From assembly GCA_002269645.1 (NCBI GenBank), contig NIVC01001557.1:186001-250000 (forward strand): a stretch of 64,000 bases of DNA, given 5' to 3'. Position 1 is the stretch's first letter, and the number at the start of each line of letters is the position of its first letter. The notes beneath the pieces are model-generated. The model made no database searches. It was not told the DNA's origin and saw only the letters and a list, made by a program, of their open reading frames with translations. This DNA is from Macrostomum lignano (Eukaryota). Position numbers and translations under genes: made by a program. Shown here piece after piece: positions 6,232-46,531 of the stretch.

Positions 6232-8652
6232 GTTCCTAAAATAGGCTTAACAAAGTTTTTTGTTCTAATAAACACAGTTTTGGTAGGCTCCTACTTTTTA
6301 AATGCATTTTAACTAGAAAAAATTACAAAAGAACTATTCTATTAGTCTACAATTTTGTTCCTTAAAGTTATCCCCCTTTCGAAATCCTAGCTATGCTATT
6401 GTTTATTTGTATATTGAAATCGATTTGTGTTTCTTTCCTAGAATGTCTATATAGTATATAATAACCATGCCAATGCCTGATTCTATCTTGCTAGTTAATC
6501 AGTATTGCTTGAAAGCACAGTAAACAAACTGATAATACAAAGGTCTTTGCAGCTATGCCTACAACTAGGCCTACTACTACTACTACTACAATACTACTCT
6601 TCAAGACAAAATACCTAGTTTTTGCATAGACCTATTATATACAATTATACCATGCAGCCATATTAGTACGAAAAAATCCATTTTAATAAGAGCAAAATGG
6701 TCGTAAGGCACTAATAAATATCACTTAGCTTAGGCATTTAAGCCATAAAACTATAGAAGTAGGCTAGATGAATAATTTGAACTCGAGACTCTTAGAGGCT
6801 CTTCATATTGCTTGTTCTGGTTCTAAAACCAGAACCAATTTGTAAAGTATAACTTTTTGTCTCGTAAACTAGAGGGATATTAGTGCTTTAAAATTGTGAT
6901 TATCGAATGGCAATACTGCCGCAATAGGCCTAGCCAAGAAGAAAGTGAAAAATTGTGCAAAGTGAGGCTGTTAAGGCAGTCAAACATTCAACAAATTTAA
7001 ATAGTTATAACAGCTTTTTTTCTTGGAAATCCGAACCGATTCTGGTTCTGGAATCGATTGCCGTGAAGAGGCTCAGAGAACGATCGAACGTGATCGATCG
7101 ATCATCTTAAAAACAGTAAACATCAAAGTTAAAATACTCACTACAACTAAAGTGTAGTTATTAGACGCTATAAAATTATCTTACATTGCTTCAAAAATAA
7201 AATAAGTTTTATTCTAAACAAAGCTAACTGTTAAGAAGATTTTTGCGTGTGTTTTATATTTTGTTTAAACTTTTTGAATTCGTTTTTCCGTTGTTTAATG
7301 TGATTTAATTAGATTGAGTAAACCAGCGTGTTAACCAGCTGGACTAGCCTTTTGCGAAATTGCGACATCATTAAATCAAATGTTCTATCTGGGATCTAGG
7401 ACTGTCTGGGATCGATGTGTATTTATGATATTGAGAGATAACGCCCTTTGCGTCCCCCTTATAATAATCGGATAATCGCCCCTTGGTGTTTGGCTCGTCT
7501 TCTATTCATGTACGTCACGACAGAGGCGTCGGCATGGATTTTATGGTAAGGGGACAAAGCCAAGAATTTTAATTGTAAATGTACATGACTCAACTCAAAA
7601 GTCAAAACCAAGACTCAAAAAGTTAAGTACATTATTTTGAGAATTGGTGTTGGCTGCTCATTTTGGCGCTGCAGGCACTCACTTTGGTGCCACAGACAGG
7701 CATTCATTTTGGCGCCACAGACACTCATTTTGGCGCCACATGAACTCATTTTGGTGCCCTGAAACAAAATTACTGATTTCCACATCGGGTCACAAAGGGT
7801 GGGGTGCAGGGCTTAAATTACTGGGCCTGTCCCCGGTGGCGACGCGCTGGCGTCACGACGACCAATCGGTACATCTTAATTAAAAAACAAAATAGTTGCT
7901 GCAAGTTTTCTTTCCAAAAACTCCTTGCTTCCTTTCTTGCTTTGGGCTCCATTCTGGACCTTTAAGTTGACATGAGATCCCCATTTTATCCCCTTTATCC
8001 CCTGGGACCCCAAGGAAGGGACCGGGATGAGATGTCTTGGCGATTCTAGTCACCTGGTCCGACCAGTTATCGATTCCAGTCGGTTTGGTCTGGAGCCTTG
8101 CTTGGCTCCATTCTAGCGCTTAAGTTGACACCCCCTTTCACTGTACACACTCACGTCCTTTTAATTCTCATATGCAACTTCGTAGAGTGCACAGAAATTT
8201 CTTTTTTTTGCTGATCTTTTTTTATGGCGCCATTTTTTCGGGCTTATGTGGGTAATTTTTTTACGATTCAAATCTCTCTCTCACACCGCGTACATCAAAG
8301 GTAAAGAGAGCAGCTGTCATGTTGCCCCATCACTCCCTCAAAAATTTAGTTTTTTTGTTGCATACTTTTCTGAACGTACCGCACAATCCATCCAGAATTG
8401 GCCACGCGTTCGAACTTCAGATAGCTCGTAAGATGTGCACAATTGTTAAAGCAAAGCAAAGACTATCGTCGCTTCTCTTTCTTTTTAAGAGTTTTTCCAC
8501 TCGACAATAGAGACAAGCGAACCATCTTTCCTGAGGCTTGCACACGAGCATTGCTTGGAAAATTAGCATCGTAAGATGGCTGCCTTAGCGTTATAAAACC
8601 ACAAGCAAATGATTAAATTTCCCTAAAATCTTAAAATAAGTTTAATCAAAGC

Positions 8653-11600
8653 ATGCATCGTGCGGCTGCTGCTGGAAACCTTCGGCAACTCCGGCGGCAG
8701 CTTGCCGCATTGCCAGCAGCAAGTCGCCAACGCAACTTGATTGTCTTGGCGGCGGCAGAATCGGCGGCCAACAATGGGCACCTGGACGTTGTGGCTTATC
8801 TTTTGCAAAGCGTTGATGATCCAAGTTCGCGGAACAGTTGGTGCTTCAATCAGTTGAGTACAAAAGCAGAGCTGCTGAGACATCCGGGAGTTGTGATTTG
8901 CCTCGTTAGGACAATTTCTGATCAGAGAAGCAAGGATAGGTGCTGTGCGCGGGTCATTGAGCAAGTACAAGTACATGTCTCAGAACAAACTGATTGGTCA
9001 CTGGTAAACTTCCTAGTGCAGACAATATCAGATGTAACACTGAAAGAAATAGTGTACTCGAAGATTGTTCTGAGTGCTGCAGAACTCAATGCAATGACAG
9101 AAGTTAGAGAATTCTCGACAGCCATATCGGATGAATCACTCAGAGATCGCAGCCAGGTACAGGCGACGAAGGCCGCGGCAAGGGCAGGCAAAATTGAAGC
9201 GGTTGAGTTCCTTTTGCCTCAGATTATAAACAAAGACCTGAGAGATTCTGGTTGCATCGAGGCCGCTGAAGCAGCTGCAAGTGGGGGTCACATGGAAGTC
9301 TGCAAATTTATCGTGAGGACAATTTCTGACGCACATCGTGACCGGTGCTGCATCTTAACCGCAAAACACGCTGCAAAACACGGCGACATAGGCTCTCTAG
9401 AGTTTCTCACTGCCATCGAGAACTTTGCGTTGGAAGACAGTAGAGACGAATGCTGCTTGATGGCGCTACAATACGCAGCCATGTACGGTCAGCTGGAGTC
9501 GACGACTCTCCTAGTAGAACGCAGACTTAGCGAATGCGTCAGGGATGAAGGCTGCGCATCAGCCGTTTGTTTTGCGTCAATTTACAACCACTTAGCAGTC
9601 GTCAAGTATCTAATGCCGCAAATATCCGATCCTGACCTGAAGGAGCGGTGCTGCAAGACCTCGGTGGAGCCGTCCATCAGAAAAGGGCATTTTGCAGTTG
9701 CCGAGTTTCTAATCGGGAGCATTTCCGATGAAGCTACGAAACATCAGTACTGTCGTACCTACGTGGACTGTGCCGTCAATGAAGGCTTCGATCAGGTTCA
9801 AGTGAAGAATTCTTTGTTTACGATTTTTTCACTGGACAAGACCGCTGCTGACTTTCATGAAAAATGCGCGGAAATAACCTCCTTAGTTCAAGGCGCAGCC
9901 TATCAAAACCTTGATTCTGACGAAGACCTCAAAGCTGCTGCCGAGTTGGCAGCTAAAAGAGAAAACTTTTGTAACGCTATTTCCAAAATAAATAAAATCA
10001 CCAAGCCCGTGACAAGAGACCAGTGTTGCAGCCGCGTTATCGATCTCGCTGCTAAATTCTATCAATGGGAGACTGTAAAGAGCCTGGTGAAAGCTATGCA
10101 GAACGAATTCCTTAGAAGCCAATGCAGCATGAAGGCTGTGGAGTCTGCTTCACAATCAGGAAATATCGATACAGTGAGATTTCTGCTGCAGCACGTGGCA
10201 ACAGAAGATCTGACGCCTGAATGCTTGAAGAAGTCTATTCAAACTGCGGCGATACACGGTCATTACGAAGTAGTGGAGTTCCTCGTTGGAAAAATTACCT
10301 GCCAGGAGCTCAAAGATGAGTCCTGCAGAAATGCCGCAATGCACGCTGCAGCTTGGAATCGACTGGCTTTGTTTGACTTCCTGGTTAAGCAAATTTCCAG
10401 CGAAGTGCTTAAAAATGAATGCTGCTTTGATGCAGCAATGGAGGCGGAGGCAATGGAAGCCGAAAGCCGAAGCCGAATTTATTTGGAAGCCGAAATTCTG
10501 TGTTTGCGGGCGGTTACTGATGGCATTCGAAGAGACGAGTATTGCGCAAAGCGCTATGAAACTGCAGACGAAATGAAACTAAACGATGCAGTACGCTTTG
10601 TTGAACTAATCGAGGACAAGGATAAGAGAGACCAGCTCTCCATCAAGCTCGCTAACACCGCCATTTATCGAGGTAAATGGAAAGTTGCCACAAAGTTATT
10701 GCAGGTTGCATCTGAGCCATACAAAATAATTATATGCAGGCGAATAGCTGAATCAGCGGTGAACGAAGGGAGTCAAATTTTTAGCATCGCTGAAAAGATC
10801 CCGGATGCCTGGCTGCGCGATCAGTTCTGGATGACTGCGGCACAGGCAAGTACAGCCAAACCGGAAATGTTGCGTCACATCTTGAAAACAATTCAATCAA
10901 ATTCTTCGAGAGCGGAACCGAACGGCTCCGATGGGCCGAAGCAGCTGGGATCCCCCCTCACTGGCTGGCCGAGAACTCGCCTTTGCTTGGCATGCTGTCG
11001 AATGAGGCGATTTCCGGCGACAACTCGTGGTTAAGTCGCACCCTGGCTGGCATGCAGGCCACTCAGATCATTCAGCTGCTCTTTCTTGCTCTAACCTACG
11101 ACTACGTCGCTCTGGCGCGCGCAGTAATTAACTCAGAGTATTTCAGCAGCGAGTTGGTCAATCAGCAGGACGCGTCTAAAGCCACCGCTCTTATGCTGGC
11201 ATCTGAAAATGGTCATCACGAGCTTATCCAGCTGCTTTTAAATGCCCGTGCATCGGTACACCTCCGAGACAGGCAGGGCAGGACAGCCTTGTCCCGGGCA
11301 TGCGAGGAGGGCCACGTGAGGGCGGTGAAAGCTCTGATCAGCTGGGGAGCTGACATCAATCATTGCGACGGCAGAGGACGAACGTGCAAGCAGCTTGCCG
11401 ATCAGAATCCGCAGCTAATAATATTTCTTGGAAAGAATAAAGAAAGCGCCAAGTGAGTTCTTTCTACAACTGTATTATAGAATTACAAAATCGACATTAA
11501 GCAAAATAAATCAGGGCACACCCTAAGAAGAACAACAAATAGTATAACTGGTAACTTCACGTACATAGCCAATGCATAGATACACGCGTGCCTGATTTCA

Positions 11601-13781
11601 TTTGTGGCTTGGCAGAGCTAATGCAAGCCACAGAAGAATACACAGAGCCTGGAATTTCCATGCCATTGAATACGCTTGAGCACACACTACAGATACAATT
11701 CTTTAACACTTCAGTTAAACAACAGGATTACGTAAGGGAACGGAAAGTCATTTGGCACGCTCGCAAAATCTGCTAGTCTTATAGGAATCCCTGATTATGC
11801 TCCCAGCCAGCTCAAAGTTATTGCAGTTCAAAATTTTCTTTTCAGGATCCCCAATGCAGAGAGAGACAGGCAGCTTAGCGAATCTCTCCACCAGCTGCTT
11901 CGTCTGGCAGGATTCACACGGGAAAGAGCGGTACTGCAGCAGTGCCTGGCTGAGTTGCTCGACGGCGTGGCTCGAGGTTTATCAGTAAATGGTTGCAACA
12001 TCACTGGCAGCTTTGCGGAGGGCTGGGCCAACAGTTTGGCCCAAGTGAATGGCAAGACAGCTGCCGACTCGGACATTGATTGGACTTTCTTGGTTGAGGA
12101 GCCAGTCTTCCATTTGGAGGGTGGATGCAAGTGTAATCGGTCACGAATGGACAGCAGACCTTTGAATGTTGTCCAAGGTCATGCACTTGTCGATTCTGGA
12201 GCAGGTAAATACCAAAAATAATGTTAGTTATTATTGATACGAGTATAATTGAGAATAAGATTTTCAATGTTTAAATATATACCGTTAAATAACTCTATCA
12301 GGCTGTCAGCCAGCAGTATCAGCACCTGCAAGCGGTGCGCGGCCCGCTCAGGACGCATGTCATGCAGTGCAGTGTTGCAGCGTCTACTTCGAAGAGCGAA
12401 TTCGAGTGCTTCTGCCAGCACCGAACCAACTCTTGCCGAACGTCCATCTAGTTAGAGCTACCCGTCCGAATGAGTTCAACGAGCTCAGAGTGAGCTTCAG
12501 CTTCCACGAGAAGCAAATCATGAGGAACCTCAATACAGTCCAGGGACAGCTCTTCGTCATCATTAAATTTATCTTCAAAAGATACTTGCCGCACACTCTG
12601 GCTACACCGGGACTCAAAACTTACCATGCTAAAACTTTGCTCTTCTTCATGCTTGAAAGCATGGAATGCACAATGCCTCCAAATGGGAATTCGTGAACTT
12701 GATCTGCCTACTGAGGGAGTCCATCGGAATGATGCTGGACTTCATTAACTCTCGGGAATCATCCGATGAGTGTATGCCGCATTTTTTTATGCCCGACGCT
12801 GCGGGTCTCTATTTTAAAAACGCAGGAGTCGGTGGGGACTTCCAGGACACTAAGGCTAGGATTCGAGGCCGCCTAGTGCGAGCTCAGAAACGACCTAAGC
12901 GATGTGATTGGGCAAATTCGAACACTTTTAAGGCCACTTCAGTCACGAAACTTTTACTTTCATCCGCGTTTTGCTTGTTGCCCTTGAGACAACTGCGTGA
13001 GTGCACGCATGCTGAAATCTTTGACGGCTGTCCATCAGAGGCCTCAAAACTTCACGCTACTGTCAGGAGCGTACAGTACCGGTGCACCTGTGCCTGGCTG
13101 AGTTGATGTCAGACTGCGGTAACCGACATGCAGTGATGCGCAAGCTCGATTGGCTTAGTCAGCTAGAAGGTGCTGCAGGTGCGCGCATCGAAATGCTTGG
13201 CCATCATGGCGCATTGGAAATTCGATCAGTTTGCCAGAGCAAAGGAAATTGCGATGCAGCTGACAGATCATTGCATTAAGAGAAGCTGGAGGCCAACTGA
13301 AATAGAAAGGATGCGCCTCTTGGAGAAAAACTATATCAACTGGGCAGGCATTCCCATGAACCTGGATTGGGCGTGGAGGTTCTGCTTCGCTTGTGATACC
13401 CAGCCGAGCCTGTCCTACCTGCCTGAGTTCACGCAAAGTCTGTTCACAGCCAGGCTGTCGCAGCCGTCGCTCCTCCCACCTGTACGTGAACTTCCGCTGC
13501 TTGAGCTGGAGTCTCCAAGCTGAGCTGCTCAATGATCTTAAAGAAGCTCTAGTTGAAAGATGGTTAGGACTTCAAGAAGACCCTGACTTGGAAGAACGGT
13601 GTGCACTCTGGCTCACTACAGCGACTGTTACGAGCACCTAAAATTTTGTCTGAAAGAGCTGGAGATTATCAGAAACGAGAGACACATTGCCATAGAGCCC
13701 AAGACATTAAAAAGATCCAGGAAGTTCGAGAGAAGTTGGAGACTCGAAGATCAACAAGAACTTCAAGGATCGACGTGTTGA
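8653..13781 (+). pseudogene. Left copy of the ankyrin-cGLR fusion gene, frameshifted in this assembly (real pseudogene or consensus errors)
   Basis: Mirror of 16251-21375. Exons are 8653-11452, 11846-12204 and 12302-13781. There is a 1-bp G deletion at 10933-10935 (atgggccg vs atggggccg) and many 1-2 bp indels from ~12657 to the gap, which fragment exon 3. Confidence 0.6.
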
Positions 13782-13933
13782 GGAAGTGAAGAAGTTGAAG
13801 CTAATAAGAATTTGACGGCTGATAACAATTTCTTAAGATTTTCTTTGTGAATACTTGACAGTCATTTACTTTCTGAACCACTTATCAAGGACAACTGTAG
13901 AATAATATTAATAATAATAACATAATAATAATA

Positions 13934-14075
13934 NNNNNNNNNNNNNNNNNNNNNNNNNNNNNNNNNNNNNNNNNNNNNNNNNNNNNNNNNNNNNNNNNNN
14001 NNNNNNNNNNNNNNNNNNNNNNNNNNNNNNNNNNNNNNNNNNNNNNNNNNNNNNNNNNNNNNNNNNNNNNNNNNN
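13934..14075. other. Assembly gap (142 N)
   Basis: Run of N that separates the left arm from the spacer and right arm. Confidence 1.
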
Positions 14076-14930
14076 TCCACTCCCGGAATTCCCACGGGTG
14101 GTCCGTACAGCTTCCTGCTTGCTCAGGGCGAGTTGTACAAGAGAGCTGCCTCTTCCCGCCTCGCCGATGGCTCCAGGCTCCAGCTCCATGGGCTCCTCCC
14201 GGATAGTTTCCAGGTTCGAGGGCGGGCTGCCATAGGGCGGCATTCGCATTCTCGGCCCGGTTTTCTGAGTGGGCCGCAGTGGTGATACTGGGCTGGGGGT
14301 TGCTGCGGTTTTGAGCCTTGGCGGTGTCCAGCAGCTGCTTCGCGCGCTGAGTTAGACCAGAGAGGATAGTGTTCCGGGCGGGTTTCCGGCCCTCTTCACG
14401 TCCGCCTGTTGCTGCAGCTTTCGCGGCTTTCCCCTTAACGGGGTCCACGTCCTCGGAGGGGTCGTGGCGACCGGGAGCTTCTTTTCCTGGGCGTTTCCGC
14501 CCGGCAGAGCCCCCGACTGCCCGCTTACGCTTCTCCGGGGGCGGTGGACGGGTGGCGTCAGACTCAAAGCTAAAGAACTGAATCTGCATCAGCCCAACAG
14601 AGATAAGGGACATGTCCGGATAGCGGAGCATCCAGCTATCCGACAGTCCGAGGATTGCCGTGAAACCGTCTCCGCCCAGCTTGGAGATGGTTCCATGAAC
14701 CACGACGCCATTTGCCGGCAGGGCCGGATTGGTTGCCAGCAGCAGGCGGCGCAGCTCGTCGGCGTTGGTGATGGCGCTGCGAGCCGGAATCCAGGTAACC
14801 GGGCTTTCAGCGTCTCAAGGAGCTGCTGCCCAGACTGGCTGTCGGCGGGCTGGATTTGGAGGGCCTGGTCTTCGACATTCGTCTTCAGGACTTGAATGAC
14901 GGTGCCGCTCAAGGCCATCCTGACCAGGTA
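14076..14930 (-). mobile_element. Degenerate gag/ORF1-like fragment of a probable non-LTR retrotransposon
   Basis: GC-rich frameshifted minus-strand reading: ...LETLKARLPGF / AITNADELRRLLLATNPALPANGVVVHGTISKLGGDGFTAILGLSDS...SVGLMQIQFF, followed by a basic low-complexity linker. It loosely resembles the '..EL..LL..QNP.L' ORF1 segments of I/Jockey/R1-type LINEs. It is truncated by the gap, and no RT is seen. Confidence 0.35.
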
Positions 14931-15882
14931 GGAGTCCAACTTCGGCTTAGTGGTATGGCCAGCGTGGAATAGTGTGGAATAATGGCCGCAAAGGTGTGGA
15001 ATAATGACTGCGCGCTGAGTGAAAGTATAAGTACAATGCACTTGTATAGTATGCAACTGAGTTGCTTTAACAGAGCTTTAGCAGAGCGCGTAAGCTTTCT
15101 GCATACGGCCAAAAATGCATATTTCATCCTTGGTTTTCAATTGTATAGGAATCGTGACTTCGAGACTCTTAAAATTTTACTGACAAGATAACCGTAGCTA
15201 GCATTTGTTTATATTTTTATTAATTCTTGGCTAAGATGACGAATCATATCAGTAAAACACTCCAACAAAAGTACATTGCTTGAATATTGTTCGAAGATCG
15301 AGCGATTTTAAAATGTGACAAAAATTTAAAAGTCCTACAAATCTGCAATGCGTCTCGATCCTATAGTATTTTGACTTTCGATACAGACTTCCAACTGTCA
15401 AATATATAAAAGTAAAAATTGCATCGATGTTGTAAGCCACCACAGGCTCCTACCATATTAGTGAATATTTGGATACTGTGGTATCCAACCCTTCTTTTGC
15501 CTAGCTTTCTTCAAAAAGTACGCAGTTTTCCATGCAAAAAGGCAATTGGACCACTTCAAAGATCGTGTAATTTTGGGGGGGACAATTTCCTAAAAAGAAT
15601 ATACACACCGCGGAGAAAGGAAAAATTCATTTTTTTCATCACAAAATCAATGATTGCATTTGATCTGGGGCAACAATTTCATTTCAAATATACTGGGCTT
15701 ATGAAATTAAAAGAAAAAAAGTATAAAAATGAAACTTTCGCTACCCAACTACGAGTATATAAAATAGCTACAACAGCGTAACATACTGTACATGCTAAAT
15801 TAATGAATAGCAATCTTTACTGCCCCAAAATTGACCTAAAATGACACTATCATTGAGTTTTACGTCCTGTTATACTATAATT

Positions 15883-16130
15883 TGTGTCCTTGAGCAAGAC
15901 ACTTAACTCTGCATTGCTTCAGTTCACCCAGCTGTAAAATGGGTCCCAGCATTAGCTGGGGTAATTCAGGGTGTGTGTGGCGACCCCCCAGTCCTTGGAC
16001 TCAGCCGTACGCAGCCTTCAGATGCGCGCGCAATAGCTGCACGGCTGAGCTGTCGGTTGCGCATCTGGCCTAATTGGGGCAGATGTAATCAATTATTATT
16101 ATTATTATTGTTATTATTATTAATATTATT
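15883..16130 (+). mobile_element. SINE with CORE-like domain and (ATT)n tail, apparently 5'-truncated
   Basis: tgtgtccttgagcaagacacttaac...cttcagttcacccagctgtaaaatggg resembles the CORE-SINE/MIR central domain. It ends in an (att)n tail. A second diverged copy lies at ~54878-55120. Confidence 0.7.
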
Positions 16131-16250
16131 CTACAGTTGTCCTTGATAAGTGGTTCAGAAAGTAAATGACTGTCAAGTATTCACAAAGAAAATCTTAAGA
16201 AATTGTTATCAGCCGTCAAATTCTTATTAGCTTCAACTTCTTCAACTTCC

Positions 16251-19200
16251 TCAACACGTCGATCCTTGAAGTTCTTGTTGATCTTCGAGTCTCAACAACT
16301 TCTCTCGAACTTCCTGGATCTTTTTAATGTCTTGGGCCTCTATGGCAATGTGTCTCTCGTTTCTGATAATCTCCAGCTCTTTCAGACAAAATTTTAGGTG
16401 CTCGTAACAGTCGCTGTAGTGAGCCAGAGTGCACAGTTCTTCCAAGTCAGGGTCTTCTTGAAGCTCCTTGAACCATCTTTCAACTAGAGCTTCTTTAAGA
16501 TCATTGAGCAGCTCAGCTTGGAGACTCCAGCTCAAGCAGCGGAAGTTCACGTACAGGTGGGAGGAGCGAGGCTGCGACAGCCTGGCTGTGAACAGACTTT
16601 GCGTGAACTCAGGCAGGTAGGACAGGCTCGGCTGGGTATCACAAGCGAAGCAGAACCTCCACGCCCAATCCAGGTTCATGGGAATGCCTGCCCAGTTGAT
16701 ATAGTTTTTCTCCAAGAGGCGCATCCTTTCTATTTCAGTTGGCCTCCAGCTTCTCTTAATGCAATGATCTGTCAGCTGCATCGCAATTTCCTTTGCTCTG
16801 GCAAACTGATCGAATTTCCAATGCGCCATGATGGCCAAGCATTTCGATGCGCACCTGCAGCACTCTAGCTGACTAAGCCAATCGAGCTTGCGCATCACTG
16901 CATGTCGGTTACCGCAGTCTGACATCAACTCAGCCAGGCACAGGTGCACGGTACTGTACGCTCCTGACAGTAGCGTGAAGTTTTGAGCCTCTGATGGACA
17001 GCCGTCAAAGATTTCAGCATGCGTGCACTCACGCAGTTGTCTCAAGGGCAACAAGCAAAACGGATGAAAGTAAAAGTTTCGTGACTGAAGTGGCCTTAAA
17101 AGTGTTCGAATTTGCCCAATCACATCGCTTAGGTCGTTTCTGAGCTCGCACAGGCGGCCTCGAATCCTAGCCTTAGTGTCCTGGAAGTCCCCACCGACTC
17201 CTGCGTTTTTAAAATAGAGACCCGCAGCGTCGGGCATAAAAAAATGCGGCATACACTCATCGGATGATTCCCGAGAGTTAATGAAGTCCAGCATCATTCC
17301 GATGGACTCCCTCAGTAGGCAGATCAAGTTCACGAATTCCCATTTGGAGGCATTGTGCATTCCATGCTTCTCAAGCATGAAGAAGAGCAAAGTTTTAGCA
17401 TGGTAAGTTTTGAGTCCCGGTGTAGCCAGAGTGTGCGGCAAGTATCTTTTGAAGATAAATTTAATGATGACGAAGAGCTGTCCCTGGACTGTATTGAGGT
17501 TCCTCATGATTTGCTTCTCGTGGAAGCTGAAGCTCACTCTGAGCTCGTTGAACTCATTCGGACGGGTAGCTCTAACTAGATGGACGTTCGGCAAGAGTTG
17601 GTTCGGTGCTGGCAGAAGCACTCGAATTCGCTCTTCGAAGTAGACGCTGCAACACTGCACTGCATGACATGCGTCCTGAGCGGGCCGCGCACCGCTTGCA
17701 GGTGCTGATACTGCTGGCTGACAGCCTGATAGAGTTATTTAACGGTATATATTTAAACATTGAAAATCTTATTCTCAATTATACTCGTATCAATAATAAC
17801 TAACATTATTTTTGGTATTTACCTGCTCCAGAATCGACAAGTGCATGACCTTGGACAACATTCAAAGGTCTGCTGTCCATTCGTGACCGATTACACTTGC
17901 ATCCACCCTCCAAATGGAAGACTGGCTCCTCAACCAAGAAAGTCCAATCAATGTCCGAGTCGGCAGCTGTCTTGCCATTCACTTGGGCCAAACTGTTGGC
18001 CCAGCCCTCCGCAAAGCTGCCAGTGATGTTGCAACCATTTACTGATAAACCTCGAGCCACGCCGTCGAGCAACTCAGCCAGGCACTGCTGCAGTACCGCT
18101 CTTTCCCGTGTGAATCCTGCCAGACGAAGCAGCTGGTGGAGAGATTCGCTAAGCTGCCTGTCTCTCTCTGCATTGGGGATCCTGAAAAGAAAATTTTGAA
18201 CTGCAATAACTTTGAGCTGGCTGGGAGCATAATCAGGGATTCCTATAAGACTAGCAGATTTTGCGAGCGTGCCAAATGACTTTCCGTTCCCTTACGTAAT
18301 CCTGTTGTTTAACTGAAGTGTTAAAGAATTGTATCTGTAGTGTGTGCTCAAGCGTATTCAATGGCATGGAAATTCCAGGCTCTGTGTATTCTTCTGTGGC
18401 TTGCATTAGCTCTGCCAAGCCACAAATGAAATCAGGCACGCGTGTATCTATGCATTGGCTATGTACGTGAAGTTACCAGTTATACTATTTGTTGTTCTTC
18501 TTAGGGTGTGCCCTGATTTATTTTGCTTAATGTCGATTTTGTAATTCTATAATACAGTTGTAGAAAGAACTCACTTGGCGCTTTCTTTATTCTTTCCAAG
18601 AAATATTATTAGCTGCGGATTCTGATCGGCAAGCTGCTTGCACGTTCGTCCTCTGCCGTCGCAATGATTGATGTCAGCTCCCCAGCTGATCAGAGCTTTC
18701 ACCGCCCTCACGTGGCCCTCCTCGCATGCCCGGGACAAGGCTGTCCTGCCCTGCCTGTCTCGGAGGTGTACCGATGCACGGGCATTTAAAAGCAGCTGGA
18801 TAAGCTCGTGATGACCATTTTCAGATGCCAGCATAAGAGCGGTGGCTTTAGACGCGTCCTGCTGATTGACCAACTCGCTGCTGAAATACTCTGAGTTAAT
18901 TACTGCGCGCGCCAGAGCGACGTAGTCGTAGGTTAGAGCAAGAAAGAGCAGCTGAATGATCTGAGTGGCCTGCATGCCAGCCAGGGTGCGACTTAACCAC
19001 GAGTTGTCGCCGGAAATCGCCTCATTCGACAGCATGCCAAGCAAAGGCGAGTTCTCGGCCAGCCAGTGAGGGGGGATCCCAGCTGCTTCGGCCCCATCGG
19101 AGCCGTTCGGTTCCGCTCTCGAAGAATTTGATTGAATTGTTTTCAAGATGTGACGCAACATTTCCGGTTTGGCTGTACTTGCCTGTGCCGCAGTCATCCA

Positions 19201-21375
19201 GAACTGATCGCGCAGCCAGGCATCCGGGATCTTTTCAGCGATGCTAAAAATTTGACTCCCTTCGTTCACCGCTGATTCAGCTATTCGCCTGCATATAATT
19301 ATTTTGTATGGCTCAGATGCAACCTGCAATAACTTTGTGGCAACTTTCCATTTACCTCGATAAATGGCGGTGTTAGCGAGCTTGATGGAGAGCTGGTCTC
19401 TCTTATCCTTGTCCTCGATTAGTTCAACAAAGCGTACTGCATCGTTTAGTTTCATTTCGTCTGCAGTTTCATAGCGCTTTGCGCAATACTCGTCTCTTCG
19501 AATGCCATCAGTAACCGCCCGCAAACACAGAATTTCGGCTTCCAAATAAATTCGGCTTCGGCTTTCGGCTTCCATTGCCTCCGCCTCCATTGCTGCATCA
19601 AAGCAGCATTCATTTTTAAGCACTTCGCTGGAAATTTGCTTAACCAGGAAGTCAAACAAAGCCAGTCGATTCCAAGCTGCAGCGTGCATTGCGGCATTTC
19701 TGCAGGACTCATCTTTGAGCTCCTGGCAGGTAATTTTTCCAACGAGGAACTCCACTACTTCGTAATGACCGTGTATCGCCGCAGTTTGAATAGACTTCTT
19801 CAAGCATTCAGGCGTCAGATCTTCTGTTGCCACGTGCTGCAGCAGAAATCTCACTGTATCGATATTTCCTGATTGTGAAGCAGACTCCACAGCCTTCATG
19901 CTGCATTGGCTTCTAAGGAATTCGTTCTGCATAGCTTTCACCAGGCTCTTTACAGTCTCCCATTGATAGAATTTAGCAGCGAGATCGATAACGCGGCTGC
20001 AACACTGGTCTCTTGTCACGGGCTTGGTGATTTTATTTATTTTGGAAATAGCGTTACAAAAGTTTTCTCTTTTAGCTGCCAACTCGGCAGCAGCTTTGAG
20101 GTCTTCGTCAGAATCAAGGTTTTGATAGGCTGCGCCTTGAACTAAGGAGGTTATTTCCGCGCATTTTTCATGAAAGTCAGCAGCGGTCTTGTCCAGTGAA
20201 AAAATCGTAAACAAAGAATTCTTCACTTGAACCTGATCGAAGCCTTCATTGACGGCACAGTCCACGTAGGTACGACAGTACTGATGTTTCGTAGCTTCAT
20301 CGGAAATGCTCCCGATTAGAAACTCGGCAACTGCAAAATGCCCTTTTCTGATGGACGGCTCCACCGAGGTCTTGCAGCACCGCTCCTTCAGGTCAGGATC
20401 GGATATTTGCGGCATTAGATACTTGACGACTGCTAAGTGGTTGTAAATTGACGCAAAACAAACGGCTGATGCGCAGCCTTCATCCCTGACGCATTCGCTA
20501 AGTCTGCGTTCTACTAGGAGAGTCGTCGACTCCAGCTGACCGTACATGGCTGCGTATTGTAGCGCCATCAAGCAGCATTCGTCTCTACTGTCTTCCAACG
20601 CAAAGTTCTCGATGGCAGTGAGAAACTCTAGAGAGCCTATGTCGCCGTGTTTTGCAGCGTGTTTTGCGGTTAAGATGCAGCACCGGTCACGATGTGCGTC
20701 AGAAATTGTCCTCACGATAAATTTGCAGACTTCCATGTGACCCCCACTTGCAGCTGCTTCAGCGGCCTCGATGCAACCAGAATCTCTCAGGTCTTTGTTT
20801 ATAATCTGAGGCAAAAGGAACTCAACCGCTTCAATTTTGCCTGCCCTTGCCGCGGCCTTCGTCGCCTGTACCTGGCTGCGATCTCTGAGTGATTCATCCG
20901 ATATGGCTGTCGAGAATTCTCTAACTTCTGTCATTGCATTGAGTTCTGCAGCACTCAGAACAATCTTCGAGTACACTATTTCTTTCAGTGTTACATCTGA
21001 TATTGTCTGCACTAGGAAGTTTACCAGTGACCAATCAGTTTGTTCTGAGACATGTACTTGTACTTGCTCAATGACCCGCGCACAGCACCTATCCTTGCTT
21101 CTCTGATCAGAAATTGTCCTAACGAGGCAAATCACAACTCCCGGATGTCTCAGCAGCTCTGCTTTTGTACTCAACTGATTGAAGCACCAACTGTTCCGCG
21201 AACTTGGATCATCAACGCTTTGCAAAAGATAAGCCACAACGTCCAGGTGCCCATTGTTGGCCGCCGATTCTGCCGCCGCCAAGACAATCAAGTTGCGTTG
21301 GCGACTTGCTGCTGGCAATGCGGCAAGCTGCCGCCGGAGTTGCCGAAGGTTTCCAGCAGCAGCCGCACGATGCAT
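16251..21375 (-). CDS. Ankyrin-repeat / cGAS-like (Mab-21 family, cGLR) nucleotidyltransferase fusion, 3 exons, predicted 1544 aa
   Basis: Exons 21375-18575 (2801 nt), 18181-17823 (359 nt) and 17725-16251 (1475 nt) total 4635 nt = 1545 codons. Intron 1 is AA|GTGAGT...TTTTCAG|G (phase 2); intron 2 is GCAG|GTAAAT...TATCAG|GC (phase 1). NTase motifs: GSFAEGWANSL...DSDIDW, a third acidic QDACHA, ELRVSFSFHEKQIM, LKTYHAKTLLF, CMPHFFMP. Canonical ANK repeats (TALMLASENGHHELIQLLL, GRTALSRACEEGHVRAVKALISWGADIN) end exon 1. Confidence 0.88.
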
Positions 21376-24300
21376 GCTTTGATTAAACTTATTTTAAGAT
21401 TTTAGGGAAATTTAATCATTTGCTTGTGGTTTTATAACGCTAAGGCAGCCATCTTACGATGCTAATTTTCCAAGCAATGCTCGTGTGCAAGCCTCAGGAA
21501 AGATGGTTCGCTTGTCTCTATTGTCGAGTGGAAAAACTCTTAAAAAGAAAGAGAAGCGACGATAGTCTTTGCTTTGCTTTAACAATTGTGCACATCTTAC
21601 GAGCTATCTGAAGTTCGAACGCGTGGCCAATTCTGGATGGATTGTGCGGTACGTTCAGAAAAGTATGCAACAAAAAAACTAAATTTTTGAGGGAGTGATG
21701 GGGGCAACATGACAGCTGCTCTCTTTACCTTTGATGTACGCGGTGTGAGAGAGAGATTTGAATCGTAAAAAAATTACCCACATAAGCCCGAAAAAATGGC
21801 GCCATAAAAAAAGATCAGCAAAAAAAAGAAATTTCTGTGCACTCTACGAAGTTGCATATGAGAATTAAAAGGACGTGAGTGTGTACAGTGAAAGGGGGTG
21901 TCAACTTAAGCGCTAGAATGGAGCCAAGCAAGGCTCCAGACCAAACCGACTGGAATCGATAACTGGTCGGACCAGGTGACTAGAATCGCCAAGACATCTC
22001 ATCCCGGTCCCTTCCTTGGGGTCCCAGGGGATAAAGGGGATAAAATGGGGATCTCATGTCAACTTAAAGGTCCAGAATGGAGCCCAAAGCAAGAAAGGAA
22101 GCAAGGAGTTTTTGGAAAGAAAACTTGCAGCAACTATTTTGTTTTTTAATTAAGATGTACCGATTGGTCGTCGTGACGCCAGCGCGTCGCCACCGGGGAC
22201 AGGCCCAGTAATTTAAGCCCTGCACCCCACCCTTTGTGACCCGATGTGGAAATCAGTAATTTTGTTTCAGGGCACCAAAATGAGTTCATGTGGCGCCAAA
22301 ATGAGTGTCTGTGGCGCCAAAATGAATGCCTGTCTGTGGCACCAAAGTGAGTGCCTGCAGCGCCAAAATGAGCAGCCAACACCAATTCTCAAAATAATGT
22401 ACTTAACTTTTTGAGTCTTGGTTTTGACTTTTGAGTTGAGTCATGTACATTTACAATTAAAATTCTTGGCTTTGTCCCCTTACCATAAAATCCATGCCGA
22501 CGCCTCTGTCGTGACGTACATGAATAGAAGACGAGCCAAACACCAAGGGGCGATTATCCGATTATTATAAGGGGGACGCAAAGGGCGTTATCTCTCAATA
22601 TCATAAATACACATCGATCCCAGACAGTCCTAGATCCCAGATAGAACATTTGATTTAATGATGTCGCAATTTCGCAAAAGGCTAGTCCAGCTGGTTAACA
22701 CGCTGGTTTACTCAATCTAATTAAATCACATTAAACAACGGAAAAACGAATTCAAAAAGTTTAAACAAAATATAAAACACACGCAAAAATCTTCTTAACA
22801 GTTAGCTTTGTTTAGAATAAAACTTATTTTATTTTTGAAGCAATGTAAGATAATTTTATAGCGTCTAATAACTACACTTTAGTTGTAGTGAGTATTTTAA
22901 CTTTGATGTTTACTGTTTTTAAGATGATCGATCGATCACGTTCGATCGTTCTCTGAGCCTCTTCACGGCAATCGATTCCAGAACCAGAATCGGTTCGGAT
23001 TTCCAAGAAAAAAAGCTGTTATAACTATTTAAATTTGTTGAATGTTTGACTGCCTTAACAGCCTCACTTTGCACAATTTTTCACTTTCTTCTTGGCTAGG
23101 CCTATTGCGGCAGTATTGCCATTCGATAATCACAATTTTAAAGCACTAATATCCCTCTAGTTTACGAGACAAAAAGTTATACTTTACAAATTGGTTCTGG
23201 TTTTAGAACCAGAACAAGCAATATGAAGAGCCTCTATGAGTCTCGAGTTCAAATTATTCATCTAGCCTACTTCTATAGTTTTATGGCTTAAATGCCTAAG
23301 CTAAGTGATATTTATTAGTGCCTTACGACCATTTTGCTCTTATTAAAATGGATTTTTTCGTACTAATATGGCTGCATGGTATAATTGTATATAATAGGTC
23401 TATGCAAAAACTAGGTATTTTGTCTTGAAGAGTAGTATTGTAGTAGTAGTAGTAGTAGGCCTAGTTGTAGGCATAGCTGCAAAGACCTTTGTATTATCAG
23501 TTTGTTTACTGTGCTTTCAAGCAATACTGATTAACTAGCAAGATAGAATCAGGCATTGGCATGGTTATTATATACTATATAGACATTCTAGGAAAGAAAC
23601 ACAAATCGATTTCAATATACAAATAAACAATAGCATAGCTAGGATTTCGAAAGGGGGATAACTTTAAGGAACAAAATTGTAGACTAATAGAATAGTTCTT
23701 TTGTAATTTTTTCTAGTTAAAATGCATTTAAAAAGTAGGAGCCTACCAAAACTGTGTTTATTAGAACAAAAAACTTTGTTAAGCCTATTTTAGGAACTAG
23801 GGATTCATGGAAATATTGTTTAAAACATTTTAATAGTAGGCCCTAATTTAAAAGTGAAACAGGCCATTTTTCAATTTTTGGCAATTATAGTAGGCCTATC
23901 TGTTTTATTTAGATTTTTTTTCAAAAAATATTTTTGTTCTTTATAAATCATCAAAATGAGAGGGTAGGCCCATATATCCCCATATTAGCTAGTTGTTGAA
24001 ATAGAAGATCTTGGTTTCATTGTTTTTAATTTCATCATATTTTATGTTTTATGTTATTTTATGTTTAATTTATTTTTAATTTTGTTATATATAGCAGACT
24101 GCTAAGTGCTGCAATGCACTGCTAAATTTCTAATCTAGTTGATATAGCAAAAATACATTCTGCAGCAATAAATAATCTGCTAATCTGGCAACAGTAAAGG
24201 TAGGCATTGTCACAATTGACAATTGTCAATGTCATGTCTTCTTGTGCCTAAAAACCAGCATATTACTTACAATGATACAGCTTGGCTGATTATTTTTTTC

Positions 24301-26324
24301 TGTACACTGAGCTAGCAACAGTGTATTGTGTTAAGGAATTTACCATATAGCTAGGCCATTTGACAAAAAAGTTGACAAGTTTACTAGCACCCAAGAGTAT
24401 GACCAACATGTAAAATGGTATAACATGTACAACACACACAATGGCTAGTCTTAATGCAGAATAGAAATTTCCATCGTATATTTATCTTTCAGCACTATAG
24501 TTGCATTATGCTTAATTCATAATTGTATATGCCTATTTATGAATTAGTAGATCTAAATTTGGATTTGTGCATATTTCATTGATTTTATAGTCTACTAGTC
24601 TATTTTTTGAATAGCCTTCTGCCATGTTTTAAGTTTCCACTAAAACTAGCTAACCATAGGCCTATATATATGCATATGCCTAACACTGTAGCTGACATGG
24701 CCAAAAGGCCAATTAGGCCAGGTGGCAAGAGGTCTTGCAAAGATAAATTGCAAAAACATTGACCCAAGAATGGAAACATAATACTAATTAGATGATGCAA
24801 TATTTAGCCTAAATGATATAATCATTTAACATTATTACTTTTGTCATTTACCAAAAATTATATTTAGGTTTCTTTTATAGGAAAGGATAAGTCATATTTT
24901 AGTCAAAAAGTAAGTTGCATGGCTGATATAAATCAGGGAGTTTCATATATAAGTAACCAATGGTCAAGCAGGGACTTGATACTAATGTCAATGAATCATA
25001 GGCCTATATAATAATACACATATGCACTTCTTGAATTTTCATATAAATAGAAGTATTGTCATTTTTGCTAATGTGCAATTCTATGAATGTGATGGTTGTA
25101 GGTTTAAGGATATAATGCTAAATCTCTACCTATAAAAATAAAAACTCAATGTGTGTCTGTTTGTAGACAATTTTGTTTGCTATGAACTCCCAAACCGCTC
25201 AACCAAATTACACCAAATTTTGTACCCACCCTAAACTCACTATGGAGAATGTCTTAGGCTACCTTTGAATTTCCTAAATTGAGTCTTCCTACCTAAAAGT
25301 ACAAAAAACTGCTCAAAATGCACAATTTTTTTTCACTAAACCCTCCATAGCGCTGCTCTACTTCTACCAATTCCCTTCAAATTTAACACAGACAATCTTC
25401 AACTATTTAGGCACAATCATGTAAAATTTCGAGTCTCAAAGTTAATCCTGAGCAGTGCTGTGCACTTTTAAAGTTAGGCTGTTTTTTTCAGCGTAGCAAC
25501 CACCTTAACTGTCTGCCTGCCTCTCTTTCCCAATCCCAATCTGGGCCCAATATGTGTAAAATGGGTTTCAAAATTGACTAACTTTTAGCTGCTATAAGTT
25601 TGCTCCACATAAAGCAATTGACTTTAAAGTTGACACAATTCTTCATTGACTCATTCTTTATCTAAATGTAAAGTTTCAACTCTAACTCAACCAAAAAAGA
25701 AACTCTAAGCATGTGAAGTTTGTTTGATTTTTCTGTTGTTTGTGGCACTCACTCACTCATTCCCCCAGAGCCAGACCAAGGGTCAGGTGATAGGGCTGAA
25801 TGTACATGGCAGTGTACAATGTTTTGGGATAGCTTTGTTTATGGCCTTCTCTGCACCCCCTGTGGAGAGGCTACGTTTAGCCATCCATAACAGTTTAGTG
25901 AGAAATTCTAACCACTGTCCTCTGTATAGGCAAACTCTGTAGCAGTTTAACAGTGGATGGCAAATCAAGGTAATCTAGCATGGTTTGTAAAAGTGAAAGA
26001 TTTATAAAAAGGCAATGCAATGCAATAAAACCCTATTAAATTAGTCACACCATAGAAATTTAAGGTTTCTCTTAAGGTACTTTAAAATTTAAATGGCCTA
26101 AGAAATGCGTATTTCTTTGGTTGTTAGACTGATGCAGACTGCAGTGGAGCTGAAGATACACAAATTCTTTTCAGGGCTTGCAAATTGGCAAGAAAGATGA
26201 CATGATCAAAGCATGAGAACAGCCATGAGAGTACTACGTCCCACAAACTGGCTTTCCAAGCAGGAATAGGCAGACTTTTACCTCAAAGGCCAGAAAAGAA
26301 TCCTGCTTATGGCTGAAGGGCAGT

Positions 26325-27280
26325 TGAGAGTGGAGAGAAAAAGAAATAGACTATTTGAAAAGAGAGGAGAGATGATAGAGAGAATAAGAGAAAAGATAAA
26401 ATATAATAAGAGAGTGAGGACGATGAGAGGAGACAGTAGAGAGGAGCAAGTAAAGGAAAGAGTAGAGTAGTGAGTGGAGAAGAGAGAATAGAGGAGTGAG
26501 TAGAGAGCAAAGAGAGCTGCAGATGAGAGGAGAGCAGAAAGAAGAGCAGAGAGGAGTTAGTAAAAAGGAGAAAGGAGAGATGAGAAAGTAAATGGAAAAG
26601 AGAAGAGATAAGGTTGTACAGATGAGAGAGGTGTAAGGAGAGATGAGAGATAAAGGAGGAGAGTGGAGAGAGAAGAGACAAGACAAGAGGGAGAGAGTAT
26701 ATAGAAGAGAAAAAAAGAAGAGAAGAAAGGAGAAAGGAAAGTGAGGAGACAAAAGAGGTGAAAGAAAAGAGTACAGAGGACAGAATGAAAGAACATATTA
26801 GACAGTAAAGATGACAATTGAAAGAGAGGGGATGAGCTGAGAGCAGAGACCAAAATGAACAGATAAGAGATGGGAGAGTAGAGAGAACAGAGGAGAGATA
26901 AGAGAGAAGAGATTACAGAGACCAAAGGAGAGACAAAGGGAGAGAAGTGAGTGAGGCAAGAGAAATGAAAATTAAGAGATAAAAGAGAAAAGAGAGAAGA
27001 GAAAGGAGAGATCAGAGAGCAAATAAAGACGAGAAAGAAGAGAGGTGAAGGAAAAGACGAGAAAAGAGTGGGAGAAGAGGAAAGAGAAAAGAAGAGAAGA
27101 GATGAGATAAGAGAGATGAAAAAGAAGAGAAATGAGGGAAGATACGAGAGAAGAGGGGAGAAAGGAGAGAGGAAAAAGAGAAGAGAGGAGAGGAGAGAGA
27201 GCAGAAAGGAGAGACGAGGGACGAGGGACGAGAGAGAAGAGAAGAAACAGAAGAGAAGATAGAAGTATCAAAGGATTCAA
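26325..27280. repeat. AG-rich low-complexity tract (mirror of 1975-2930)
   Basis: Reverse complement of the CT-rich tract with a few substitutions. Confidence 0.9.
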
Positions 27281-30200
27281 GGGATGTAGGGAGAGTCAGA
27301 GGCCAGAGTTTGCTAATACATATTTTAGAGTCCAACAAACATTAATTGCCTATTTAAAGTAAAAAGCACCCTAGCCAACAATATCAATGTTTGCCTCAAA
27401 TCCTAATTTTATGCGAATGTACTCCATTTTGTTTACCTCTATCCTACTAACTATTAACAAGCTTTTGTTTGAGTGTGACTTCAGATAGTAGAATACATGC
27501 AAAAATAGTTCCGGGGATGGGAAACCACGGGTTCAAAATCCACAGGTTTCAATAGCTTGTTGTAATATGAAAAAAGGTCATTAACATTAGTTTTTTATCC
27601 TAAAATAACAAGTCTGCATTGTAGTTTTTAAAAAAAATTTTTGGAACTTTAATTTTTTTTGAAAGCAAATGGGACACAGTGTGAGTGTGATGGTTGTAGC
27701 CATAGAAACATGCCTATATGGAGACAAAAAATGCTTTTGAATTCCTGTGAATTTTGGTTGCCTAATCATCTAGTGGTTTTTTTTCTAAAAAATAATGTAT
27801 ATACCTACTGTAAAACACAAAGAATGGGATGATTTGCTTGTTTGGATTTTTTTTATTCAACTTGTTTAACTGTGACAGTTGTAACCTTTGATGTTAGTAA
27901 TCAGTGAAGTCTATGTAATTGGAATGCAACCACATGGTCCACACTGACTGTCTCTATATATTATGGCAATAACCCACATGGAGCTAAAGCCTATGGCTAT
28001 CTGTAAGCTATCTTTATTTTAATCTGCTCATTTGCATATTGCTTGAGTGTTGCTGACTGTTTATTGCATCAAGTCATAGCACATTGCAGGTCTTACAATG
28101 GACAATGGACTGTATCACAATGATATAGGTGGAGGACCCACAACTCTTTGTTTTTGAATTTCACAAACTTCGAATTTTTGGTAAACGGCAGGAGTAATGT
28201 AGGCTATATTATCAAGGCTGAATGCCTCGTCATCTAATCGTCATCTACGTGCAGATTGCTTGCTTTTTTCAGGTGAGCATTTTTGCAATATACCTTGGCT
28301 GGGCCACTTGCCTGCCAGCCAGATCTTTCAGCTTGCCCAGGTGTTGCGCATGTATAATATCTCTCAAGTCCCTTCAATAGTTTTTTTAGTTTAGAGTACT
28401 ATTGAATAAAACAGAATTCATTGTTTAAAAAATCTGTAATTTCTTATTCTGTATATAGAATAGATATGTATGTATGTATATATATATATATATTTTAGAT
28501 TTTTAGCATATGATATAATTTGTGAGATTATGAAAGGGTATGAATAGAGTATGATAAAAATAAACTAGGTTGTATTGTATAATAGTTTGTATTATGACAT
28601 ATCAACTTTGATTTTGGAATTTTGAATTTTGATCCTAGATGCCAAAATTGCATTTCATAAAGCTTTATTTCATGGTGGAAAGTGAGTAGGCTTCAGTTTT
28701 TTATTATTGATTAAATATTATATAAATTTCTATACTATAGCATGAATCTCTTTTAAGCATATTGAACAGTAAGAGTTGGTAGCAAATGTTTAAATCATTA
28801 ATGTTAAAAGGTTTTCTCTAATAGTCTAAGCTAAATAAAGTTTTATTTTAATCTTTAGATTTTAGAAAAAAGTTAAAACTCAAGTATAATAACTAAGGAC
28901 CACAAAATAGTGGCTATGAGGGATTAAATATTTTAGCACTAAACTAAAGGAGACATACCATCAATGGAACCTAAAGTTTAAGATTGGAATATATTAGGAG
29001 CACAGATAAATGAGCATAGAATTTAGCAACTCTTATTATAAAAAAATCAGCATTATTTTACCTCACCTCACTACTTGCTTTTGTTAGTAGGATAATCACA
29101 ATTTTTGCTTTCTTTGCTAGTGTTTTTTGTTATATTATATCAATTATTTAGTTGGTGAGAATCAGTCTCATGTTTTAGGCATGCATTGTGGGTCAATAAT
29201 TGATCTACTTGCATCTGTTTGGGGTAAGTCATAAAATAATAAGAAAATTCCCAAATTGGTAATTTTAGGCCTGTGGCTGTCACGTAAACTTGTTTATAAT
29301 GCCGTTCTAGTTGAATCTATTTGAACTCAACTTTATGTGGACGTTGTTGGCCCAAGTCAGTAGGTAGTTACTGTTTTGAGTCTGAGGATAGTACAAGCAA
29401 GAGAGGGGCAGATGTGGTGGTAAATGAGTTGTTTACACGTGTTCTTAGATGTTAATTTGTCTGGATGTGAAGCTGTGGGCGTGAGTCCGGTCTCTCTCCA
29501 CTCTATTCCCGTGTAGTCCTAGTTGAATTCTAATGGCCCCAGCTGCTTTGCCATTCTCTCTGTGTCTCCTGCCTCTCTCTAGTCCTCACTTTCAATCATT
29601 CAGCAGCTGCCTGTGTTTGGCTAATCAACAATACTCCTCTCCCCTTCGCATCTATATTCGACCTACTCCCGCGCTCTATGGATGTTTTGGCTGGGCAATA
29701 GAGAGAAATATGGAGATTCACTAGGCTAGCAGTCACGTGAAAGCTGGCGCCCAGTCTCAAGGGGAAGAAATTTTCTCTTCCCCAGGAGTTTGTCCTCAGC
29801 AACCCAGTTGTACAGCCGAGCGCACTTGCCGCGCTCCGCTCTCTCTCTGGCTGCCTGTCCATCCCCCATCCCAGTCAGAGTTCTCTTTCAGTAGGAGGGG
29901 ATATTGAGGATGTACTTCTGCGTACCGAATTGGGGAAGGAAAGAAAGGCTTATTTGCTTAGGCACTTCAATCTTGTGCAGCAGAATTGAGCACTAAGCTA
30001 TTGCTAGCTCTGGGAGCAGTCTGGTGTGGCGACTGTTCTTCTTCTGCCTGCTCTCTTCCCTTGCCCTTCCCCGCTCCCTTTCTCCTATAGGCGAGGAGGA
30101 GATCGGGGAGTGGGTCTCTCTATGCGCTCGGCTCGGGGCGTGCCCTCAGCCGGCCGGAGACCAAAGCGAGCCAGACGGAGTGAAAAAGAGGAGGCGGCGA

Positions 30201-46239: not shown

Positions 46240-46474
46240 GGGAGGTAGACAGACAGGCAAGCAGACAGACAGACAGACACTAAGACAGACAGACAGACAG
46301 ACAAACAGGACAGACAGACAGACAGACAGAAAGACAGACACTAAGACAGCCAGACAGACACTAAGACAGCCAGACAGACAGACAGATACTAAGACAGACA
46401 GATAGACAGGCAGACACTAAGACACTAAGACAGACAGCCAGACAGACACTAAGACAAACAGCCAGACAGACACT

Positions 46475-46531
<57 letters not shown>

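Follow-up and report, generated by a model that had tools for sequence, protein, structure and literature searches.

A 64,000-nucleotide stretch of the genome of the free-living flatworm Macrostomum lignano (contig NIVC01001557.1, positions 186,001 to 250,000; hereafter the window) contains, at 16251..21375 on the minus strand, a single three-exon gene encoding a fusion of ankyrin repeats with a cGAS-like receptor (cGLR). Very probably, the product of this ankyrin-cGLR (ANK-cGLR) gene is composed of an ankyrin solenoid, a cGLR nucleotidyltransferase (NTase) and a helical extension of approximately 265 residues; we infer its catalysis, its ligand, the role of its ankyrin array and its downstream receptor. 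The features of the locus are collected in Table 1.

When the exons at 21375..18575, 18181..17823 and 17725..16251 were joined, a frame of 4635 nt with one terminal stop was obtained, encoding 1544 residues. The first-pass annotation, which had proposed these splice sites and the 4635-nt stop-free frame, was exact in every detail. Both introns are of the GT..AG type. Exon 1 ends with ...GCC AA|GTGAGT at 18575, exon 2 runs from the acceptor TTTTCAG|G ATC CCC at 18181 to the donor ...GCAG|GTAAAT at 17823, and exon 3 begins at the acceptor CTATCAG|GCTGTC at 17725; read-through of either intron leads to a stop almost immediately. The two phase-matched introns of the first-pass annotation, the second of 97 nt, were borne out, and its two Mab-21 fragments are exons 2 and 3. 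The spliced product was identical at 1544 of 1544 residues to GenBank PAA65972.1/PAA66460.1 of M. lignano (P0228; BOX15_Mlig006393g1/g3, UniRef100_A0A267EY65), which falls in the same protein cluster as a partial model of this locus and whose annotated gene span is 5125 bp, equal to 16251..21375. Because the two agree at every residue, the gene model is no chance artefact. Locus L003 (contig NIVC01001557.1, assembly GCA_002269645.1) matched the window at 100% identity, and two partial public models of this locus read ...KNKESAK|IPNAERD... and ...DSGAG|CQPAVS.... The Mlig_3_7 annotation was made by genome-guided RNA-seq transcript assembly with STAR, StringTie, TACO and TransDecoder (Wudarski et al. 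2017; PMC5730564), and the junctions of the GenBank model therefore have transcript support. For the same reason the fusion is not hidden, as had been supposed: the identical 1544-residue model has been public in GenBank and UniProt since the 2017 annotation. ANK-cGLR is one expressed M. lignano gene with a cytosolic three-module product.

Residues 935-1280 (approximately 345 residues) were identified as a cGAS/Mab-21 NTase by structural model and by profiles. Because the single sequence gave just a sub-threshold Mab-21_C match in Pfam, a family profile built from 16 trimmed paralogues was used instead. Against PDB sequences this profile matched cGLR1 (8gjy, E 9e-6), many cGAS entries (E approximately 1-2e-5) and MAB21L1 (E 4e-3), over the C-lobe only. 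In a library of 1.84 billion representatives, 1243 proteins were matched at E<=1e-3 and 90 at E<=1e-30; when eight of the distant matches (annelid and unnamed ENA proteins) were sampled, seven had both PF03281 and PF20266 above the cutoffs and one had PF20266 only. Comparison by hhalign with the Tribolium cGLR sequence of Li et al. 2023 (Table S3) gave no match (probability 0.2%), and an alignment of 17 lophotrochozoan Mab-21-type proteins was therefore used as a bridge. With these proteins (GS..EG..SDxD..HGPA..D.V.A.RC) the profile aligned over the whole NTase, at a probability of 99.8% and E 8.7e-30, in 264 columns running from the spine helix to the C-lobe, and the GS, SDxD and third-Asp columns coincided. 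The lophotrochozoan proteins pass the PF03281 and PF20266 thresholds, whereas the flatworm family mostly fails them; remote Mab-21 homology, by profile and by predicted structure, is nevertheless shown despite the sub-threshold Pfam score. As expected of a cGLR, both the NTase core and the helix bundle C-terminal to it are covered by this homology.

The AlphaFold2 model of the 610-residue C-terminal part had a predicted local distance difference test score (pLDDT) of 81.4 and a predicted template-modelling score (pTM) of 0.85. When this model was compared with the PDB by Foldseek, the top six matches were all human cGAS, with E values of 1.4e-5 to 1.2e-4, a probability of 1.0, approximately 390 aligned columns and template-modelling (TM) scores of 0.52-0.56 by target length, followed by MB21D2 (2.1e-4) and then by MiD51 and DncV (0.17). 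The predicted structure is thus homologous to known cGLR/CD-NTase enzymes, and the earlier claim that the C-terminal region is a Mab-21 NTase stands; its catalytic motif is intact. With human cGAS and MB21D2 the model shares the bilobal Mab-21 fold, the spine helix, the GS loop, a DxD motif and third Asp on the central sheet, and a helical C-lobe with YH.KT. It differs from them in having only 13-16% sequence identity, a 20-residue GS-DxD loop and large appended N- and C-terminal domains; no zinc ribbon was identified in the window protein in this comparison. The active-site rule given for cGLRs by Li et al. 2023 is h[QT]GS [X8-20] [DE]h[DE]h [X50-90] h[DE]h, and the window protein follows it with I-T-G988-S989, 20 residues, D1010-I-D1012-W, 56 residues and Q-D1071-A. 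The G and the S of the activation loop were each present in 122 of the 124 family members covering the site, the third catalytic Asp was D in 92 of 108, and all five catalytic residues were kept in 90 of the 104 members covering all sites. As judged from sequence and predicted structure, a working cGLR-type nucleotidyltransferase is favoured by the fold and by an intact two-metal site that is conserved in paralogues down to approximately 30% identity.

The N-terminal ankyrin-type array, put at approximately 930 residues in the first-pass annotation, was found to comprise 934 residues and to be fused to the Mab-21-fold NTase in one gene. In a Pfam scan of residues 1-934, Ank_2 was matched in 7 stretches (E 5.9e-38), together with Ank_4 (5.4e-34) and Ank (3e-29). 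The region therefore falls in Pfam clan Ank, with most of its N-terminal units being a variant of 36-37 residues as compared to approximately 33. These units follow the pattern ..ISD...RD.CC..A..AA..G....V.FL.., with a conserved RD.CC motif, and a repeat hidden Markov model (HMM) trained on the highly regular units of paralogues gave 20 matches in the N-terminal part. The 36-37-residue type is confined to one subfamily, at 0 to 11 units per protein at a strict threshold, and a repeat number of 0 to 11 or more across paralogues suggests rapid repeat turnover. Paralogues P0008, P0010, P0012 and P0013 share the RD.CC repeat type, and within some paralogues the units are near-identical. The computed isoelectric point was acidic for the repeat array (5.9) and mildly basic for the NTase module (8.3). 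An ankyrin solenoid is usually a protein-binding module, and this contrast is compatible with, and does not prove, an enzyme that contacts nucleic acid and a solenoid that contacts protein.

The C-terminal extension is common to all family members. It includes the near-invariant LYVNFRCLSWSLQAELL, and the family's highest conservation lies within it. The extension is missing from distant non-flatworm Mab-21 homologues, in which profile positions of approximately 300-584 were unmatched. The AlphaFold2 model of the extension had a pLDDT of 86 and a pTM of 0.86, and when the extension alone was compared with the PDB by Foldseek, no match below E 0.2 was found. Assignment as a tetratricopeptide repeat (TPR) domain was dropped, the best Foldseek matches being weak TPR/IFIT/APC-like ones at E>=0.2.

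With a junction-spanning query of 733 residues, full-length matches were obtained only from M. lignano. At least 40 annotated M. lignano paralogues, 47-57% identical, were aligned at 98-99% query coverage and so contain both the ankyrin and the Mab-21 halves; when six of the top 50 family-profile matches were sampled, all six were from M. lignano. ANK-cGLR proteins have undergone a large expansion in M. lignano, and the window gene is one of these paralogues. P0015 carries a protein kinase within the exon that encodes its cGLR-like domain (L006 5158-6948), and the genes of P0035 and P0090 include ankyrin repeats and a caspase, that of P0035 being compact (3.65 kb, L005 3001-6651) with short introns. 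The effector-fused paralogues have lost catalytic residues, reading GSDGS, GSDNS and GSDNT at the five positions, and P0037 is also degenerate. P0006, a UniProt model of 1036 residues, contains two tandem Mab-21 units (residues 242-793 and 832-1036) and represents either several cGLRs fused in the manner of OAS2/3 or adjacent genes merged into one model. P0039, from a 3238-bp JGI metagenome contig, is a 467-residue member, 45% identical, with the Mab-21 C-lobe and the flatworm-specific extension; because it comes from an environmental metagenome, the family is probably present in another Macrostomum-like flatworm. At the family level, it is conceivable, although we consider it rather improbable, that M. 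lignano has a diversified repertoire of intracellular receptors built on one scaffold (variable repeats, cGLR and the unique C-terminal domain) with a switchable output, in which intact sites would produce a nucleotide messenger and decayed sites would act through a fused caspase or kinase, bypassing STING.

By likeness to cGAS and the characterised cGLRs, the window protein may carry out ligand-triggered synthesis of a cyclic nucleotide. The enzyme would be inactive in its resting state. A ligand would bind either to the mildly basic NTase surface, as happens in cGLRs that sense nucleic acids, or to the ankyrin solenoid, and its binding would order the GS activation loop. D1010/D1012 and D1071 would then bind two metal ions, nucleoside triphosphates would be joined into a cyclic di- or oligonucleotide, and this product would be read by a downstream receptor. 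The ankyrin array may serve as ligand sensor, as autoinhibitor of the enzyme or as localiser; Li et al. 2023 propose the ankyrin repeats of ANK-cGLRs as protein-/ligand-interaction modules (Fig. 1C/S2A; PMC9980059).

Several points weigh against this interpretation. In Pfam, where the ankyrin models that the first-pass annotation wished to see compared were strong, its Mab-21 models fared poorly: PF20266 (Mab-21_C) reached 23.1 bits (E 8.4e-5) with the single sequence, below the gathering cutoff of 24.1, and PF03281 was not matched at all by the single C-terminal sequence. The window protein thus stays under the Pfam Mab-21 gathering thresholds, while several paralogues pass that of PF20266. 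The TM scores to cGAS are moderate (approximately 0.55), with a root-mean-square deviation of 7-10 A. A Gln precedes the third Asp, where the strict motif wants a hydrophobic residue; Li et al. 2023 (PMC9980059) took paralogues that share this AQD[TA]C as cGLRs and cloned them. Transcript support for the junctions is second-hand, through the annotation method. Moreover, the word 'lignano' is absent from the main text of Li et al. 2023 (PMC9980059), so that no cloned M. lignano enzyme is among the 15 characterised active cGLRs, and no biochemical activity has been reported for the window protein or for any M. lignano paralogue.

This lack of reported activity would fit a Mab-21 domain that is a non-catalytic scaffold or sensor, like MAB21L1 or MiD49/MiD51, with the protein acting through protein-protein interaction by its ankyrin and helical domains and making no messenger. 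We regard this alternative as unlikely but worth weighing. MiD51 and MiD49 are among the structural matches, catalytic residues have been lost in paralogues P0015, P0035, P0037 and P0090, and the flatworms listed in the species table of Li et al. 2023 (PMC9980059) have 0 cGLR and 0 STING genes. However, GS, both metal-binding Asp residues and the third Asp are kept here and in the 90 of 104 members noted above, at approximately 30-57% identity, and catalysis is favoured because such conservation is hard to explain otherwise. The best structural matches, cGAS and MB21D2, have E values approximately 100-1000-fold lower than that of MiD51. In addition, loss of the site is found chiefly in paralogues that gained a fused kinase or caspase, which suggests that the active site matters where it is kept. 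A catalytic cGLR thus remains the preferred interpretation.

That the ankyrin open reading frame (ORF) and the Mab-21 region are two genes, or the cistrons of a trans-spliced operon, and the fusion an artefact of the gene model, is highly improbable. The 934-residue ankyrin ORF (21375..18571, minus strand) does close on an in-frame TGA at 18573..18571, in GCC AAG TGA GTT, and spliced-leader trans-splicing occurs in 38.8% of M. lignano genes (PMC5730564). However, the G of AAG is the first base of a GTGAGT consensus donor that the TGA overlaps, and no in-frame ATG was found between the upstream stop at 18294 and the start of exon 2. Exon 2 has no start codon of its own, and translation of the C-terminal part first reaches a Met at residue 101, past the GS and DxD motifs, so that the Mab-21 part could not be translated alone. 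Paralogue P0019 has two introns at equivalent sites and in the same phases (one in phase 2 shortly before the spine helix of the NTase, the other in phase 1 exactly at G|SQPA), and paralogue P0004 shares the CAG|GCAGCC acceptor at the second of these sites. Models of the 40 or more paralogues span both halves, and the transcript-derived GenBank coding sequence is itself the fusion. Lack of a start codon, intron phases shared with paralogues and a gene model derived from transcripts rule out the two-gene or operon reading in practice, leaving the single fused gene.

The architecture was put forward in the first-pass annotation as a candidate new one, and this did not hold. Approximately 3,000 animal cGLRs were catalogued by Li et al. 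2023 (bioRxiv 10.1101/2023.02.22.529553; PMC9980059); 87% of them are single-domain and some have tetratricopeptide or ankyrin repeats (Fig. 1C, S2A, Table S2), with ANK-cGLR listed as a minor architecture. In their domain table, the M. lignano paralogue PAA68676.1 (P0004) is listed with Ank_2 domains, and according to their Table S3 five M. lignano cGLRs were cloned as NTase-only constructs without the ankyrin part, two of them in the subfamily of the window gene. The architecture and the flatworm family are therefore already catalogued. The accessions of the window protein were not found in the accessible supplementary text of Li et al. 2023, which does not prove their absence, and literature searches on Macrostomum with cGAS, Mab-21 or STING gave no dedicated paper. 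PAA68676.1 (BOX15_Mlig016402g1) and PAA93208.1 (BOX15_Mlig001946g3), of the same species and family, are approximately 55-57% identical to the window protein over NTase and extension and have the same layout of ANK repeats, a TGS[YF]AEGW...DSDIDW...PAQD[TA]C NTase and a helical extension, with the same intron positions. Compared to PAA68676.1, the N-terminal array of the window gene is longer (934 versus approximately 350 residues) and more degenerate. The ANK- and death-domain-fused cGLRs of the coral Stylophora pistillata, in the ANK-cGLR class of Li et al., likewise combine a Mab-21 NTase with ankyrin repeats; they belong to a different phylum, and the flatworm protein has the 36-37-residue Cys repeat variant and a C-terminal helical domain without PDB match. 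The suggested NLR-like logic is an analogy only, as no NACHT, NB-ARC or other P-loop domain was found when both halves were scanned with Pfam. Assignment to the NLR/STAND family was ruled out for lack of a STAND NTPase, the likeness being the general layout of a repeat sensor with a signalling domain. The observation made from the letters is thus confirmed and its interpretation partly supported: the proposed AlphaFold and Foldseek comparisons gave human cGAS (E 1.4e-5, probability 1.0), and the proposed search gave the paralogues described above. The window gene had been annotated before and belongs to a kind that is already catalogued, so that its novelty is low.

Table 1. Features of the ANK-cGLR locus, with positions in the window
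Feature	Position	Strand	Details
Whole ANK-cGLR coding span	16251..21375	minus	3 exons, 1544 residues; GenBank BOX15_Mlig006393; 5125 bp
Exon 1, ankyrin-type repeat region, residues 1-934	18575..21375	minus	2801 nt, phase 2 end
Degenerate Cys-containing ankyrin-like repeats of 36-37 residues (approximately 16-18), residues approximately 30-735	19171..21288	minus	repeat HMM and Ank_2 stretches
Two canonical ankyrin repeats, residues 836-906	18658..18870	minus	best Ank_2, Ank_4, Ank and Ank_3 stretches
Intron 1	18182..18574	minus	393 nt, GTGAGT...TTTTCAG, phase 2
Exon 2, NTase spine helices, GS motif and DxD motif	17823..18181	minus	359 nt
Codons G988-S989, ITGS activation-loop motif	18016..18021	minus	align to the invariant GS of Mab-21 proteins
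Codons D1010-I-D1012, metal-binding [DE]h[DE]h	17947..17955	minus	align to the invariant SDxD of lophotrochozoan Mab-21
Intron 2	17726..17822	minus	97 nt, GTAAAT...CTATCAG, phase 1
Exon 3, third catalytic Asp, Mab-21 C-lobe and C-terminal extension	16251..17725	minus	1475 nt with stop
Codon D1071, third catalytic Asp in PAQDACHA	17673..17675	minus	aligns to the invariant D of HGPA...D.V.A.RC
Mab-21 C-terminal HhH/H2TH-like segment, residues 1153-1219, ...GLKTYHAKTLLFFMLEK...	17229..17429	minus	PF20266 E 8.4e-5; family profile matches cGLR1 (8gjy) and cGAS here at E approximately 1e-5
Family-specific extension, residues approximately 1280-1544 (approximately 265 residues)	16254..17048	minus	helical repeats and small three-stranded sheet
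Scaffold gap of 142 N	13934..14075	.	adjoins arm A end
Inverted second gene copy, convergent	8653..13778	plus	frame broken by small indels; first ORF 8653..11034

The first 29 kb of the window form an inverted repeat, in which arm A (205..13933, plus strand) is paired with arm B (29059..16097, minus strand) around a centre at 13934..16096. Identity between the arms is 97.6% in the outer 5.3 kb; in the gene-bearing 7.7 kb the differences amount to 1 substitution and 23 gap columns. In arm A, ORF 8653..11034 equals a GenBank-annotated 793-residue ankyrin protein (P0229), which is probably a truncated artefact model. That the locus under study is itself an assembly artefact or a pseudogene is equally hard to credit: it lies inside this giant palindrome beside a scaffold gap, its partner copy is frameshifted and the arm differences are nearly all small indels clustered at the end of arm A, beside the N run, but the arm B copy has the intact 4635-nt frame and the same gene is found on another contig (NIVC01001601.1:217390-238514, L004), at 8001-13125 of that locus, with an identical 1544-residue protein and 99.7% DNA identity over 9.7 kb. 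L004 follows arm B to the gap edge at 14076 and then continues in unrelated sequence with no inverted copy; since it carries the gene without the palindrome, any artefact is arm A and not the gene. The Mlig_3_7 assembly was made with Canu, Pilon and SSPACE scaffolding and contains 180 Mb of redundant duplicated blocks (PMC5730564), and the L004 copy is consistent with this redundancy and with the duplicated chromosomes of the DV1 line. Because L004 diverges at the gap and the assembly is redundant and SSPACE-scaffolded, a mis-joined, poorly polished contig end is the simplest reading of the palindrome, and the arm A copy is probably an assembly artefact; a real, very recent inverted duplication is a possible alternative to the mis-join.

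Elsewhere in the window, at least 11 unrelated minisatellite arrays follow one another through 31682..62948. The arrays are 0.5-2.8 kb long and have periods of 16-34 bp (22 at 43298..45621 and 26 at 49809..52619, for example), and several of them yield long spurious ORFs and extreme GC skew. Between two of the satellite arrays lies a GC-rich (up to 62% GC) ORF of 714 residues (47729..49873, plus strand) with weak sub-threshold matches to PHD-finger and C2H2 zinc-finger models; this ORF may represent a genuine gene or derive from a transposon.

Since the published screen used NTase-only constructs without the ankyrin array, a role of the array as sensor or autoinhibitor lay outside its scope. 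M. lignano, which is competent for transgenesis, is a reasonable system for the study of cGLR sensor diversification, given how large the family is, that no structure matches its C-terminal domain and that loss of the active site goes with gain of a fused caspase or kinase. The family-level reading is the sole part of possible wider interest; if true, it would mean that a sensor derived from a cGLR signals without STING, in a phylum from which cGLRs are reported to be mostly absent.

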